DNA from: Bigelowiella natans CCMP2755 | Lineage: Eukaryota; Protista; Cercozoa | Direction: 5' to 3' | DNA: 64,000 nt | Assembly (NCBI GenBank): GCA_000320545.1 | Contig: ADNK01001278.1 | Coordinates: 62,001-126,000, forward strand | In this document: in pieces, positions 40,783-50,190 of the stretch | Layout of the letters: every line of letters begins with the position of its first letter | Position numbering within the stretch: position 1 is the first letter of the stretch | Program-made: the position numbers and the translations under genes | Notes under the pieces: generated by a model | The model's database searches: none | The model's input: only the letters and a program-made list of their open reading frames with translations | Told to the model about the DNA's origin: nothing

Positions 40783-41571
40783 TCATTTGCATTTTTTGTT
40801 ATCCTCTTTATTCGATTTGGAAAGCTCTTTATTCGATTGAGTAAGCTCCGTACATCTGATAATACTAACCGCGCATACCCCAGCTTCATGAAGGGACAAT
40901 GCAGTGAATATGTGCCATGCAAAGGCATGAAGATTGAAATTCTGAACGTATTTACACGCGAATACATCCAGTAACCAGGCACAAGCACCAATACCGGCTA
41001 ACCCAGCACATGCTATGGCACGTCTCCGGATCTTACGATAGATTATCTTGTCGGCTAAGTTTTCCAGTTCCGCGATACGGCCACGTAAGCTCGTCAATCC
41101 ACAAAGGACCATTGCGACAAGATGCACCTCGCAAAATAGCTCTCGTATTGTAAATACTCCAACAAATAAAAGAACACAATGGACGATTGTCCACGAGATA
41201 TTCGCAACACGAAGCGGTTTTCTGGACATATAAAACACGGCCAGGACCGCACAGTTCTCAAAGAACTCGTCCGACTTCTGTGCGACGAACAGCAACGTGG
41301 CATGAAACCACCAAGAGGTAACCCCAGTCATGAATATTGATGCGCAATATATATTGAACAAAAATACGGCCACCCTCTTCTCCCCAGGATCTCTCATACG
41401 TCGAAGCTCTGGAATTTGGCGAAGGAAAAGAACGATCGCCACCACCATATACGCAACATTAGTCCACGTGTTATGAAACTCTTGGATACCAGCGAAGTTA
41501 CTCTCAGGCATATTTATTTCGCACCAATCAATGGGTGAAGGCCCCCAGAGGACACCCCTACTTGGTAACAT
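40783..41571 (-). CDS. Alkaline ceramidase (CREST superfamily), single exon
   Basis: WGPSPIDWCE.N, EFHNTWTN, SWWFHATL, KSDE and LHAFAWH metal-binding motifs, with about seven hydrophobic segments. Confidence 0.9.
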   Translation of the reverse strand: MLPSRGVLWGPSPIDWCEINMPESNFAGIQEFHNTWTNVAYMVVAIVLFLRQIPELRRMRDPGEKRVAVFLFNIYCASIFMTGVTSWWFHATLLFVAQKSDEFFENCAVLAVFYMSRKPLRVANISWTIVHCVLLFVGVFTIRELFCEVHLVAMVLCGLTSLRGRIAELENLADKIIYRKIRRRAIACAGLAGIGACAWLLDVFACKYVQNFNLHAFAWHIFTALSLHEAGVCAVSIIRCTELTQSNKELSKSNKEDNKKCK

Positions 41572-43435
41572 TTGGTCTCCACAGATTCTCACACTCGGGT
41601 GTTCATAAGCGGGCCGATCTTAGATATTATCGCCAGAACCTCTCCGATTTTTGTAAAATTGCTCTGCCATTTGACCAAATTCCATCTTCCGCCGGGGGAA
41701 TCCCAGCTCGTCTACCGGAAATTTTACCACTCCTTCTTCTACCGATCTCCGATGAGATCAACGATCTCCTTGTCCCTTTGCATGAATGACTGTGGTCCCC
41801 TAAACCAGGAGGCGTCACTGCCCTTGATGTGCTTCGATGGTCCTAGAAATAGGCGGCGAAAGATGCAACAAGCTGGCGCACTATTTATTTGGAGGTGTAT
41901 GAAACATACCATGGCTACCGATGCATTGCAACTAAGATTCCACTGAGCATATGAAAGACGACGTTGATCCCAATGTAGAGGCCAAGAATTGCTTTCGTCC
42001 ACGTTGGGCATGTTTCGTCATTCTCATGACGACGGCGGCATAATGTGCAATGGTGATGATGTAGACGATGAAGTAGCAAAGTCGTAGTCAAAAATACCTA
42101 ACGAAACACGCTCATCATTATCCGAGAGGTACTGAACATGGAGTACAACGAAGATAGTCGCTAGCGGGCTAGTCTTTTCCCAGTCCATAATGTCGATTGT
42201 CGATTTTCGTTTTGGTGCTTTCGAGGGAAATAGAATCCTACCAATATATAGAGATTCGCTCACTCCTTATGAATAGAATGGACACTCATTACCAGATTCA
42301 ATCCAACGATTGTGGTTTCTAATTGTTTTAGTTACCATGTTAAAGACGAATGCATTTATTGCTGTTGAAACTGTCAACCTGCAGCATATCGATGCGTTTT
42401 TTCCCAAAATGTAAACGATTTTGAAGTTCGTTGTGCGACTCTTCGTACGCTCGTAAGAAGTTGCCATCATGCCAAAGGAGTCGCAGAAGATAGAGCTTTC
42501 GAACAGGTATTCATTACCCTAGATGAAGACCGATATGGAGAAGATGGGACTTGGGGAACGACGAGGATATTGACGATAACCAATAAGGACCACTGTATAC
42601 GTATCGATACAAGTAGGCTACATGGAGCTTAATATTATGGAAATGTGCAAATCATAAACTCACATCCAACTTGGAAATTTAGCAACGTCATACCCCACGA
42701 TGTGACTGGTAATAGGATTCGTTCTCAACGGAATGTGTCTGCATTGTGTCTGCCATTTACCATCTCTTGAAGCAGCAATCATGCATAGAATACAGGATTT
42801 GCTCGTAATTCTTGCAAAAACAAGCAAAGACTATGCTACATGTAAGCGATTAATGCACATTTTGTTTTTAGTGTTACGAATTTGAAACAGTCAACAGAAA
42901 AATAAGGGACTCGCCGGGTAACCAAAGCGCGCAGTCAGCGCAAAATGTGCGCACATGTTATCTAGGTATATCCATATGCAACTTGCATCGTACGTAAGCG
43001 CAAGCAACGAATAACACGCGCCACATTGTCGTGTACATGTATTCACAGCAGAACATGGATCGCAGGTACGATGTATATTGGATGGAATGATGATAATTAG
43101 CTAGCGCCTGCCACGCCGCCGGCTAGTTGATACTTATCTAGCTAGTGTAGACTACATGCTATGCTGGTTCGATGTATGTCGTACGCACGGCCTCATGTGA
43201 GCACAGTAAATAGCCATAGCGCTATAACAATTGGGCCAGCATGGGCACAACTGTGGTACATTGACATGCGTGTGAAGACATCAATCTCATAACCTTTCGT
43301 AGCACAGATGATGTTCTTGATTAAAGCTGCACACTGCGTAGTAGATCGATTGCACACAAAGATGGATCGAGCTAGTGAATTGAGTAGTGTAGTGTTAAAA
43401 TGTATAGTACTTCATTGCATTCATCCTGCTTGATC

Positions 43436-44747
43436 CTAGAGTTTGTCTTTCTTTTCTGATTGTTTCTTCGGTGGAGGATAGTACGTGCCAATTGTCAATG
43501 CGTAGTGCGCTCCAAATAAATGCCATTCTTCGAATTCGTCAAACATTTCCAATTTCTCTATTCGCGCCTTGTCCTTCGGGTCGAGGATTTTACTATAAAC
43601 AGTGTTCATGTCGAAGGATTGGGCATCAGTCCATCCACAGTCTCTATATCGCTTTACTTGAGCTTCTAATGTCGGATAGGCTTTAAGGCTTCGCAGTGCG
43701 CAGCCCCGCCCCTGCAAATTCTGAATCATTATTTGGCCAAACGGATCGTCCGGACGGATCTGTTCATAGCATACAAACCTCCCAAAACCACCACCGTTAC
43801 TGCTTTTCTTAGAAGCCCAGGCAATCACCCCAGTCGAGTACTTAGGTTCCAAATATATCAGTACGCACTCAGATAGAAAAAGCGTGGGAATTGAGAAGTC
43901 AGCGCCGCATTTTTCCATGGCAACATCAAGCGCTTTGGGATCGCGAAGGTCACAGCTCACGAGATGGTAGTTCTGCGTATGTATATCAGCCTGGATTTTC
44001 TTTCGTTTAACCTTCTTTTTGCTAGGATCCTTCTCCTCATCACCACCTGCTTCTTCCCCTTCTTCGTCGTCAAGTCCAGCGAGGCTTCGGAGCTCCGCTG
44101 TCGCTCTAATAATGTGTGCTTTCCTTTGTGCAATGTCCGGTAGATCTGCTTCGATATAACGGAAACCTTTGAACCCCGCTTTGCGTACTTTAAAAAATGT
44201 CGTGTCGAAACCGGCGCCCAGGCACACGATCTGGTAGCCCTTAGCATCCAGGTCATTAGCAGATGATGATTCTGTTTCCATCGCAGTTGTCTGAGACGAG
44301 GTTGTGGTGCTACCAGCTGGTGGGGAGCAGATTTTAGGTTGAGGCCCATTTTGTAGGAAGTCTTTTACCATTATTTCAAAAGCCGCTACCCGTGAATAAT
44401 AGCCTACAGAAATTTATAAGAATTGTTCATCATGCCAAACGATGTTCAAGGCAGGATATGTGTTTCTAGAAAGGCTATATACTTTTGGTACAAAAGGAAA
44501 CCAATTAATACCACGGTTAATGAGCGGCGAACGCTTAGCTCGCTTTGTCACAAAGTATTGAAGAAACTTGTCATCAAAGTATCCTTTCTCCGCAGCACAC
44601 CTAACAAGCCCACCCATAATCAATCAAGATCCAAAGAACATACTCATAACCCTAACACTAGAATAAGAAAGGGCGAGAAAAAGCTGGTGAGTACAATTTG
44701 GAGACTGCGGCGTCGTCAGAGGTGCCCTGGACCGCCTTCACGTCCAT
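43436..44747 (-). CDS. LCMT1: Leucine carboxyl methyltransferase 1 (PP2A methyltransferase, PPM1)
   Basis: VQGTSDDAAVSK|..KGYFDDKF..RSPLINRG|YYSR, QIVCLGAGFDT, PTLFLSECVLIYL, YEQIRPDDPFG, LEMFDEFEEW. Confidence 0.95.
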
Positions 44748-45901: not shown

Positions 45902-48527
45902 CTATTTTCGGGATGTATGGTTCTTCAATTTCATGGACTTCGTCTTGAGCATAAGGAAGGTGGAGGCCAGAGCGTTTCGTCTGTTGTAAGTGCAAATTTG
46001 TGTTAAGGGCTGATGAGGGGTGGAGTTAAACGCTGAATCGGGGTACAACTATTGTAGGAGCATTATTTCAATGAAGTAGTCAATAAAAAATCACCTGCCA
46101 TCAGACTTTTTCAGTCCAGGCCTCTTCTTCTTGTGCTCTTTTGTTTCCAGCTGCTGCTGCTGCTGCTGTACAGTTTTAGTTTTCTTCTCCGAAACTTCTT
46201 CCCTGAAGAAGACCAATTCTAGGCTTGGATGCGCAGCATCCTGGTGGAATGATTGCAGATAAGGAATTCGCAACATCAATTTGAAGCAAATGAGAAAGCG
46301 TTCAAAGATTTCCTTTCCCAATGTTCTACTGTTACAAAATAGTACTTTTGAGGGGCTGTTCTAATCTTACAACATACCCCTTTCTTGGCTATCTATGTAC
46401 TATTCTTACCGAATTCTCAATGATATATTGCTGGCAGCTCTTGTCCTTGAATAGTTTATTAACCCCTTTCTTTACATCATCGCATCTTTGAAAGCCGAGA
46501 TCCTTAGATAAACGAAGGTTTTAGATAGAAAAGGGCTGTGGCAGAAGCCTTAAGCTTTAAAATGAGCGTTGTTTTCACAATTTTGTTAAATTTTGGTTAA
46601 CAAAAACAAATATTGTCACTATCCTCCACTTTGGTTTGTTTCCCTCTCCAAAGACAATCCTGTACCTTGATGACATTGTAGAAATTCTTCTCGCGATCAG
46701 CGAATCTGGCCCTGTTGGCAATCCACAAATGTAAGGGTTTGGTAGACACCGTCCTCACCAATTCGATGGTCTCGAGCAATGCCCCATATGAGTCGGCTTC
46801 GTACATACAGTCCGACATAATCAGCACATCTGCAATAATTGCAGCAGTAACGATGTTCAGATCACAACGAGCAGGAGAATATGCAGTTGTATAAAGATGT
46901 GATAATGTCAGAAGTAGTGAAGGATAGACAACCTATCGGCATGCTATCGAGTATTTCCTGAGACAGCTTTGAACCCCATACGTACTGCGAAACCACAAGC
47001 CCCTCAGCTTTTTCCTGCTTAATTTATCCCATAAAGGCATTCGACTAAGATACTTTGGCGGATTTGAACAAAAATGTAATTGGTTAGCTTGTTGTCACCT
47101 CATTCGTGAGATTCCTATGAGCGTTGTAACGAGCTAGTTTGGTGTATTTCTCAGAACCTAATGTTAACCAATAAATGGAAAAATATACTTGGCTTGTCGA
47201 TTTCTCACAATTGTCAAGGCAAAGCCTTAATTTTCATTGCCTAACCGTCTGTAATATGGACGAACGCAGCCCCTGCGATCTTGCATGCAATGCTTACCTA
47301 CGATATTGGTTCATTTACTTTTATGTGTACTACGAGTAGTGTTCACCAGAAAATTAATGCACAGCCATCGCTACAATAATCGCAGTCATCTCTGATTTTA
47401 TTTGCCCTATTTTGTAATCTTTATCTGTTCTTTCTCAAACATCTTCTTCACTCAATATAATATTTTATCACCAGTCCTGTCCCGGCACCAATCTCTAAGA
47501 CCCTTTTCCCTCGTACCCCTCCTGCTGGGAGAAGAGCTTCAGCCTGAGAACGACAATAATCGCATTAGACAACGTGGTGATAATCACGATGATGATGGTG
47601 CACTTTGTAAACGTGAAATAGCCTTATGGAATTCACTAATGATTCGCTGTGAAGTATATCATGCTGATCTTTCGCTTCCACAGATGGAATTACGGCGCAG
47701 TAACTTTATAAAGTTATTACGCACTACCTGTTCCACCATACTGTTTGCAACAACGAAAGACAGGAGAGCGCCACATCCCCACACCGCGCCTCCTGTATCC
47801 ATACGTGAGACATTGGGAGCGACAGAGTTCATCTTGTTCTTTGAGTAATCCAATAATCGCTCCTTTTCCCTGATGAGGTCTATGACCTGATCGCAAAGCT
47901 CCTGAATGCTGATGATATCTTTCTCCGATATCTCCGTCCCCATGGATATTTCAGCCGTTTCCTTCAGCTTGATCTCCAAAGTCTTTGGCAGAATATTGGA
48001 GAAGTTGACGTCCTTTGCGTTGGCGCGCATGCCCATAGCCTTGACTGCCTCGGCAAACATGAGAGTATCCGGAACTATCTTTATTATCTCAGGGAAGTGC
48101 CATCCATACCATTCCCGCATGCGCATGGCGTATGTTTTAAGATCTTTGTCAACTTTATCCAAGTTTGCTAAGTTGAGGAGGAGAGCGTTGAGTGGAGAAA
48201 ACGGTGTTGATCAGAACAGAACAGAAGAGAATGCGTAGAACGGGAAAGTTCGTATGAAAGTAAATCGGAAAGGAATGTAAGGGAATGACTCAGCAGATGC
48301 ACTCCACGCACGGAGGAATGACGAAAGAAAAGATTTATCTCAGTCTTATTACTGCTCTCACTGTCCTGCCCAAACTGCTGCGTGATGACCAGCTTCCTTT
48401 TGGAGGGAATCGGTAGGATAAGTGTACGAGATTCTCTATGGCGAAGAGAAGGGGAGTCCCCGGAGGAGGAATTGATGCTGCTATCGCTCATAAGCACCGT
48501 CGCCGTCCCCTCATCAATTTTCGCCAT
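45902..48527 (-). CDS. METTL21/Methyltransf_16-type lysine methyltransferase with in-frame NOP58 segment
   Basis: LVITQ...|[NOP58 segment]DTGGAVWGCGALL|RGKRVLEIGAGTGL|VSI...VHITD|...YVWG...|DVLIMSDCMY. Start may lie further upstream (48668 or 48710). Confidence 0.8.
47809..48167 (-). other. NOP58 (NOP5) NOSIC/coiled-coil fragment
   Basis: LDKVDKDLKTYAMRMREWYGWHFPE...AEISMGTEISEKD...LCDQVI...MNSVAPNV. Lacks the NOP58 N-terminal and RNA-binding Nop C-terminal domains. Confidence 0.92.
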
Positions 48528-49105: not shown

Positions 49106-50190
49106 ATGGACGACCTCGCGGACTTAGCCGAAGAGTTTGGGCAACGGGAAAGTCTTACCAGTCGGCTTCGGAACATCCTCTCTCTCTATCCAGAAGGGCC
49201 AGGTCAAAATCATCAAAACTGATCATTCTCAAAGCAATAGACTGCCACAATTTTCCGCGTCGTCGACACGATTTTTTACAGCTTTGCCGACTGTTCCCCA
49301 TCTTCTTTGTGATCATGTCCTTCCCCATTGTCGTAACGTCCTTCCTCTTCTCGTATTCGAAGGAGTGTTATTCGAGCTAATCCAGAACGCAGATGATGCT
49401 AAAGCAACTGAAGTGAACTTGATTCTCAACAAGGTAGTAGTAGCAGTAAAATACTGAAATCAGAGTTCTTTGAAGCTTGAGACCGAATCACCTGGTGCTC
49501 GAGCGACTTGTGTTAAAATCTCCTCCAAACTCTCATTCTGTGATTTTGACGATTTTCTATCTATTTCCCCCCGTCAGGATTCCTATGGAACTTCGAGTTT
49601 ATTTGGCCCGCAGATGGCATCATGGCAGGGGCCGGCTCTTTGTGCGCATAACAACTCAGTTTTTACTCCAAGGTAGTACTGCAAATGACGATAGCGCTGC
49701 TGTGGATGATGATTAAGATGATGATGATGATAGTGATGATGATGATAGTAGTGATGATAATGGTTATCTGTAAAATATGAACATGAAACAAGAACATCGT
49801 GTTCTGCTGATCTTATGTGTACCGTTATCGTTTTCATTCTTCTCAGGGACTTCGAGGCGTTGAGCCGCATAGGGCAAGGCAGCAAGCTGGAGAAAATCAA
49901 TGCTACGGGAAGGTTTGGTCTAGGGTTCAACGCCACGTACCACTTTACAGATATACCAAGCTTTGTGAGCGCAGACAAAATTGTGTTTTTTGACCCGCAT
50001 GCCAAGTATGTCCCCGGCGCGACGGGTAATAAATAATAGACGGCTGTGAGTTGAGAAGATATATTTGATGTATGGTGATGGAACAATCATAAGAACTTGT
50101 GAATTACTGAACACCACTAATGTGGTGATCATATAAAGCATAGAAACTCAACGCTGTGCTTGTATATATTTTATGTATGCGAGCATGTAA

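Follow-up and report, generated by a model that had tools for sequence, protein, structure and literature searches.

We describe a chimeric gene in Bigelowiella natans CCMP2755. It lies in a stretch of 64,000 nucleotides (nt) of contig ADNK01001278.1 (positions 62,001 to 126,000), which we call the window and from whose first letter all window coordinates below are counted. The gene occupies ten exons on the minus strand and encodes a METTL21-like methyltransferase (Pfam Methyltransf_16). Its second exon opens with a piece of NOP58, a scaffold protein of the box C/D small nucleolar ribonucleoprotein (snoRNP). This arrangement is read directly from the genomic DNA. Taken as a whole, it is best explained, with a probability that we put at about 0.6, as a lineage-specific chimeric gene of B. 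natans that formed when a genomic piece of NOP58 entered a METTL21-like gene.

Exon boundaries were placed by unique sequence strings, and the introns are all of the GT-AG type, 81 to 194 nt long. Exon 1 (48362 to 48527) starts at ATG 48527 and has the tail ...KLVITQQFGQD. Its C-terminal end reads ...RKLVITQQFGQD before a phase-1 donor, A/GT, between 48362 and 48361 (slashes mark splice or coding junctions). A second phase-1 donor follows 9 nt downstream and would end the exon at 48353; the tandem pair (48353 to 48362, minus strand) reads A/GTGAGA and A/GTAATA. Intron 1 (48168 to 48361) measures 194 nt (185 nt if the downstream donor is used) and is pyrimidine-rich at its 3' end. It closes at AG 48169-48168, and the phase-1 acceptor that an earlier, preliminary description of this DNA had placed there has the site and phase given. 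Exon 2 (48167-47728) contains 146 codons without a stop, from 48165 to the donor GT at 47727-47726. Its NOP58-derived part (47800 to 48167) supplies 122 codons, NLDKVDK...APNVSRM, and the open frame passes from there into DTGGAVWGCGALL without a stop. The methyltransferase part of the exon (47728 to 47799) is the 24 codons of DTGGAVWGCGALLSFVVANSMVEQ, which include the TGxxVW motif.

The remaining exons encode the body of the enzyme. Exon 3 (47472 to 47543) reads AEALLPAGGVRGKRVLEIGAGTGL and holds motif I, the GxGxG that binds S-adenosylmethionine. Exon 4 (47246 to 47297) reads VSIACKIAGAAFVHITD and carries the acidic post-I residue; exon 5 (47099 to 47157) reads GSEKYTKLARYNAHRNLTNE. Exon 6 (46933 to 47017), (Q)EKAEGLVVSQYVWGSKLSQEILDSMPI, begins at a tandem NAGNAG acceptor, at 47017 or 47014. 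Exon 7 (46666 to 46829), DVLIMSDCMYEADSYG...NFYNVIK, bears the DxxY motif and covers Pfam Methyltransf_16 positions 124-172. Our seven-exon reading comes to 1104 nt in total, with the frame held across all junctions. In the JGI model of the locus, exons 8-10 follow (45902 to 46502: ~46502-46410, 46240-46094 and 45979-45902 including the stop) and supply the final strands of the methyltransferase fold, with a tail rich in lysine and glutamine. The ten splice phases of the gene are consistent.

That JGI model emerged from an exhaustive HMMER search with exon 2 against 1.84 billion representatives, which returned a single protein identical over all 146 residues, P0241. This protein is jgi/Bigna1/134996/aug1.27_g9704, an ab initio Augustus model of the locus. 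The chimera is already in the public catalog as JGI model Bigna1 134996, an entry that is no evidence of expression. P0241 maps exactly to ten exons, 48491 to 45905; it served for all analyses of the whole protein, and the exons were otherwise examined singly. It differs from our reading in starting at the in-frame ATG 48491 rather than at ATG 48527, in choosing the exon 1 donor 9 nt further on, in the exon 6 NAGNAG acceptor and in its three extra 3' exons. Either choice at the tandem donors or at the NAGNAG keeps the frame. Its domains are Nop at residues 49-168 (positions 2-120, E 2.5e-30) and Methyltransf_16 at residues 169-337, a combination found only in P0241 among the 143 best representatives. 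Four other database proteins were considered as chimera candidates and rejected. P0371 (ENA, 370 aa, from a GC-rich organism) has half a Nop domain followed by alanine-rich sequence and is most likely a model that reads through an intron; P0289, P0323 and P0332 are gene models extending into introns.

The identity of the insert rests on several alignments. In the exon-2 open reading frame (ORF), the first 122 codons match Pfam Nop (PF01798) at positions 3-120 of 228 (E 2.9e-31). They align with yeast Nop58 170-291 (E 1e-32), human NOP58 168-290 and Pyrococcus Nop5 147-269 in solved structures. By these scores, the match to NOP58 is well beyond chance. The motifs REWYGWHFPE, EISMGTEIS and APN are all found in the insert. 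The run of about 120 NOP58 codons that the preliminary description saw continuing into the methyltransferase, with neither stop nor intron between, is borne out at 122.

NOP58 and Nop5 proteins consist of an N-terminal fibrillarin-binding domain, a coiled-coil dimerization domain and, at the C terminus, one that binds RNA and Snu13 (PMC7229835). Judged by alignment to this scheme, the insert is the NOP58 coiled-coil domain, the dimerization hairpin, without the N-terminal domain (NTD) or the C-terminal domain (CTD). The Pfam Nop match ends at position 120 of 228, and the sequence past APNVSRM is methyltransferase. Pfam NOP5NT, the fibrillarin-binding N-terminal domain, has no match on P0241, and a full-length NOP58 query found no further NOP58 similarity in the 64-kb window besides the insert. 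It had been stated beforehand that the coiled coil is present and that the RNA-binding Nop domain is absent. The coiled coil is indeed there and the RNA-binding part is missing, but Pfam Nop covers both halves, so the insert is one half of Pfam Nop rather than a sequence lacking it.

Four Nop-type loci exist in the genome: the insert (C2459), NOP58 (C2474, 63% identical to the insert), NOP56 (C2622, 42%) and a PRP31-like gene (C1214, 26%). The insert aligns with host NOP58 without gaps over 122 codons, at 70% nucleotide and 63% amino-acid identity, and is single copy, with no second DNA-level copy in the genome.

The enzyme around the insert appears complete. P0241 scores 79.1 bits against Methyltransf_16 (PF10294; cut-off 21, E 4.3e-22) over positions 15-172 of 174 of the profile and residues 169-337 of the protein; the last large exon alone scores 22.3 bits. 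VLEIGAGTGL (exon 3), HITD (exon 4), YVWG (exon 6) and SDCMY (exon 7) are present and in frame, in agreement with the earlier statement that the catalytic motifs are intact. The DxxY/F motif, which lies at the substrate-lysine site, is a hallmark of METTL21-like lysine methyltransferases. Among solved structures, the enzyme part is closest to METTL21A, METTL21D and METTL21C (4LEC, 4LG1 and 4MTL; E 1e-7 to 1e-5). The N-terminal segment of the family, LxIxQ...TGxxVW, in which a hydrophobic-x-Q strand precedes TGxxVW by about 10 residues, is contiguous in a paralog from the same genome (L006), where it reads VLVAQDPLGSLRGGIGATVWDSAL. In the chimera, LVITQQFGQD and DTGGAVW stand 125 codons apart, and the first 14 positions of Pfam Methyltransf_16 are unaligned on P0241. 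That the insert splits this segment, as first described, is therefore correct. AlphaFold2 run on P0241 without an alignment gave a mean predicted local distance difference test score (pLDDT) of 36.5.

Where did the insert come from? We computed a maximum-likelihood (ML) tree of 35 sequences and 122 columns, in which the insert is the sister of B. natans NOP58 (ultrafast bootstrap [UFboot] 97; Shimodaira-Hasegawa-like approximate likelihood ratio test [SH-aLRT] 78). The same placement was obtained in a quick tree of 69 rows and in a four-point check on nonsynonymous divergence (dN). This placement indicates that the copy originated within the Bigelowiella lineage, with the host-nucleus gene and not an endosymbiont gene as its source. 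A phylogeny had been proposed in the preliminary description as a check on the source; it makes host-nucleus NOP58 the sister. The terminal branch of the insert is 1.24 long and that of host NOP58 0.025, a ratio of about 50, and by this measure the insert has evolved far faster than its parent.

The 5' limit of the insert coincides with an intron of the donor gene. Host NOP58 (L002) has a phase-1 intron (G/gt ... ag/CG) directly before LLDELDKELN, and this intron is removed in an MMETSP transcript contig (L016). The NOP58 gene of Amorphochlora amoebiformis has an intron at the same codon and in the same phase. The acceptor of exon 2 occupies precisely that codon and phase: A/CA gives T-NLDKVDKDLKTY in the chimera, and G/CG gives A-LLDELDKELNTY in the host. 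The NOP58 exon sequence upstream of this point is not present anywhere in the 64-kb window. Because homology sets in where the donor gene has an intron boundary, with no NOP58 exon from further upstream in front of it, the copy should be a genomic one that brought its own acceptor, and not a cDNA. On these grounds, the insert was most likely captured from genomic DNA by exon shuffling, own acceptor included. Intron 1 itself has no similarity to the NOP58 intron beyond 7-mers, and the 3' junction, APNVSRM/DTGGAVW, matches no NOP58 intron.

Two features of the donor genes may be recorded here. On the downstream side of the conserved phase-1 intron, B. natans NOP58 is intronless, whereas at least 15 introns occupy that part of the Amorphochlora gene (L024, 8.8 kb). 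In B. natans the conserved intron itself (L002 1114-1495, 382 nt) is by chance open in frame, which creates a spurious open frame of 603 aa.

We envisage the following course of events. A piece of the cell's own NOP58 gene would have been copied as genomic DNA into the boundary between intron 1 and exon 2 of a METTL21-like gene. The copied piece would comprise the 3' end of the conserved phase-1 intron, with its acceptor, and, directly following, the 122 codons for the coiled-coil hairpin. Given a methyltransferase exon 1 that ends in phase 1 and a 3' junction in frame, the hairpin would then be spliced in as part of exon 2. As encoded, the enzyme is otherwise intact and has the hairpin as an inserted domain, with the LVITQ strand on one side and the TGxxVW motif on the other.

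Has the insert been maintained as protein? Its 122 codons contain no stop and no indel. Differences from the host gene affect 28%, 12% and 50% of first, second and third codon positions. The changes lie in family-variable columns (Mann-Whitney p 5e-4), and 37 of the 45 changed residues occur elsewhere in NOP58s. We built a NOP58-family hidden Markov model (HMM) from 154 coiled-coil regions, with B. natans sequences excluded, and generated 500 neutral simulants from the host gene at equal amino-acid identity with stops forbidden. The insert scores 171 bits on this model; the simulants score 119 +/- 9 with a maximum of 145, and none of the 500 reaches 171. Of the 11 near-invariant columns that were lost, nine lie at the hairpin base, among the first 10 residues or the last 23. 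With caveats, the losses sit where the missing neighboring domains of NOP58 and the start of helix 1 would pack, and core and tip are kept. GC content at third codon positions (GC3) is 0.61 in the insert and 0.57 in the other exons of the gene; intron GC is 0.32-0.43. Neutral decay of the insert is disfavored by this pattern. Our reading is that the insert appears to be under relaxed but real protein-level selection. Such selection would mean that the insert must have been translated for much of its history, and we regard it as probably translated.

Several observations weigh against a selected and expressed chimera. The sole protein in the collection with this exon is the ab initio model P0241, whose 90% cluster has one member. 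No transcript of the chimera was found in word, exact and peptide searches, which is weak evidence. The word search with the exon-2 ORF gave no match above 58% identity, the exact look-up of P0241 matched no contig, and metagenome and metatranscriptome contigs scanned with six P0241 peptides yielded only foreign NOP58 and NOP56 genes; the same collection contains the B. natans NOP58 transcript. Queried with the methyltransferase part alone, the word search matched nothing but P0241 itself, with no close ortholog in other species, and without a methyltransferase ortholog elsewhere the conservation of the chimera cannot be judged. Within the insert, 11 of 44 near-invariant NOP58 columns are lost. 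In a GY94-type branch model, the ratio of nonsynonymous to synonymous substitution (dN/dS, omega) on the insert branch is 0.245, not significantly below 1 (2dlnL 0.67, p 0.41), and it is significantly above background (p 0.007). Silent sites are saturated in every comparison, with a pairwise proportion of synonymous differences (pS) of 0.7-1.0; 4-fold sites of insert and host are 37% identical against 31% expected by chance. Neutrality predicts 63% identity if the neutral divergence is 0.2 per site, and the frame stays open in ~10% of simulations. The host NOP58 GC3 of 0.96 is peculiar to its locus (NOP56 has 0.52), so molecular-clock arguments are unsafe. Finally, an in-frame alternative acceptor that avoids the insert exists at 47794-47793. 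Neutral evolution of the insert, named earlier as a refuting outcome, can be judged only in part: the family-like pattern, with 0 of 500 simulants reaching the insert's score, speaks against it, and the branch dN/dS cannot reject omega = 1.

Two uses of the silent sites were abandoned. Synonymous-site dating is unusable with pairwise pS of 0.7-1.0 and 4-fold sites near chance. An argument that took saturated silent sites as proof of long constraint was withdrawn, as the third-position divergence may largely belong to the host branch. Host NOP58 (L002, G000:C2474:2506-5868) has a GC3 of 0.90 in its large 3' exon, 0.96 in the coiled-coil part and 0.74 in the pre-intron exon. Three Methyltransf_16 paralogs have 0.38-0.53, and the NOP58 genes of two other chlorarachniophytes 0.48 and 0.66. 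The host pattern is one of locus-specific GC3 drive.

Other explanations of the locus concern its origin, its integrity and its splicing. Perhaps the methyltransferase gene took up part of a NOP58 cDNA, as the preliminary description proposed? The copied stretch is intronless, but host NOP58 is likewise intronless there, and this feature does not discriminate. A cDNA would also bring the upstream exon (DKVDTMIIQAI) directly in front of the insert, where none is present, and the homology starts exactly at the acceptor of the conserved phase-1 NOP58 intron. With the 5' limit matching that intron in codon and phase, we do not retain the cDNA model, which we consider very unlikely. The chance that an assembly artifact joined NOP58 reads to methyltransferase reads is next to negligible. 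Sanger and 454 reads went into this assembly, which is of older date and is broken up into 3,736 contigs (PMC12730881). Nevertheless, at 70% DNA identity to real NOP58 and with no second genomic copy, the insert offers no reads that could have been joined wrongly; neither junction breaks the frame, and a proper intron forms the one on the 5' side. The misassembly feared earlier does not apply to a single, diverged copy, and we confirm that the chimera is real in the genome.

A more serious contender, though still an improbable one, holds that the NOP58 piece is an intron relic. The mRNA would join exon 1 to the alternative acceptor, atacag/ga (AG at 47793 to 47794), and encode an ordinary METTL21-like enzyme, with the chimera confined to the ab initio model, or the two isoforms would coexist and the long one would be minor. 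The acceptor near 47793 that the preliminary description suggested could skip the insert does exist. Its use would remove exactly 375 nt (125 codons) with the frame retained, and like the gene's other acceptors it lacks a strong pyrimidine tract. Alternative splicing has been reported for B. natans (PMC12730881), so both isoforms may be made. The lack of an inclusion transcript in the collections searched and the failure of the branch codon model to reject omega = 1 also fit skipping. Against this, the resulting intron would be 569 nt, about three times the longest of the others (81-194 nt), and the T-G of TGxxVW, encoded across the site, would be lost and become R. The non-random, family-like substitutions, the absence of stops and indels, and a GC content that is exon-like and unlike that of the introns likewise speak for an exon. 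Since the TGxxVW motif spans the site, 47794-47793 probably belonged to an exon of the original methyltransferase rather than being an ancestral acceptor.

If the chimeric gene does yield the long protein, what might the hairpin do? We entertain, with considerable doubt, that it is a docking or dimerization module whose partner would be the NOP56 or NOP58 coiled coil, and that it would carry the lysine methyltransferase to box C/D snoRNP proteins or compete with NOP58 for them. A complex prediction that paired the insert with the coiled coil of B. natans NOP56 reached 0.40 and the best control 0.00; partner pLDDT was 82 or more, agreement between runs covered at least 80% of contacts, and the predictor grades the result as weak support. 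In the benchmark, passes at 0.60 or below took in only 5 of the 78 solved complexes and all 4 of the passing mismatches, and the pass obtained here may reflect memory of solved NOP56-NOP58 complexes. It is rather unlikely that the hairpin acts as a built-in adaptor with which the enzyme would pair with NOP56 or NOP58 and methylate box C/D snoRNP or assembly proteins, or would titrate NOP56. We give a somewhat better, still minority, chance to an insert that is translated but unrelated to snoRNPs; the hairpin would serve in a generic way as a spacer or for self-association, or the enzyme would tolerate it as a passenger in one of its surface loops. The branch ~50 times longer than that of NOP58, the 11 near-invariant residues lost (including the Y-R pair of helix 2) and the weak NOP56 pairing prediction (0.40) are in line with this, and archaeal Nop5 coiled coils homodimerize (PMC7229835). 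The retention of REWYGWHFPE and EISMGTEIS in core and tip, with substitutions that follow NOP58-family constraints, runs counter to it. The kept pattern fits a partner interface, but it fits maintenance of the fold equally.

Should the hairpin prove to be a NOP56-pairing adaptor, it would be a natural case of enzyme retargeting by grafting on the dimerization module of the new partner's usual mate. Production of the long isoform would hint that lysine methylation by METTL21-type enzymes may be connected with the box C/D snoRNP machinery, for which we know of no precedent. The locus would then also show, cleanly and datably, how a new gene formed by exon shuffling in a protist; the mechanism can still be read, since the acceptor of a donor intron was co-opted, and the graft, a self-contained dimerization hairpin, went into a surface region of an enzyme left intact. 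Skipping of the insert would leave a gene for an ordinary methyltransferase that carries an unusual relic in an intron, and the public model would have to be corrected.

The surroundings of the gene were surveyed as well. Downstream lie a leucine carboxyl methyltransferase (43439 to 44371, minus strand; Pfam LCM, E 1e-18) and a ceramidase (40786 to 41592, minus strand; E 7e-26). Upstream and divergently transcribed is a sacsin-type exon with ELIQNADDA (49137 to 49454, plus strand; Pfam SACS, E 2e-6, below the cut-off). A GAT/ATC triplet microsatellite (49583-50086 and 49705-49766), also upstream of the methyltransferase gene, produces His- and Ile-rich open frames on the minus strand and is intergenic or intronic. 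An Rfam scan of the window gave no match.

How does the chimera compare with the systems from which its parts derive? With the METTL21-type enzymes (METTL21A, METTL21D/VCP-KMT and METTL21C) it shares the PF10294 match, GxGxG, the acidic post-I residue, WG and DxxY. In contrast to them, it has a foreign domain of 125 codons in the N-terminal region, and its enzyme part is divergent. The insert resembles the NOP58/Nop5 family, the scaffold of the box C/D snoRNP, in its gapless coiled-coil alignment and in grouping with host NOP58. Missing from the chimera are the fibrillarin-binding NTD, the CTD that binds Snu13 and the K-turn (the GAEKALFR region) and the KKE/D tail. The first ~12 residues of NOP58 helix 1 (DKVDTMIIQAI), encoded before the intron, are absent from the insert, and 11 near-invariant residues are altered relative to the family. 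In its mode of formation, the gene resembles classical exon shuffling by intronic recombination: a phase-1 donor of the recipient is joined to an imported phase-1 acceptor, and the imported piece is a self-contained structural module. It departs from that scheme in that only the 5' side uses an intron, whereas the 3' junction lies in coding sequence, in frame, so that the insert is not a symmetric 1-1 exon.

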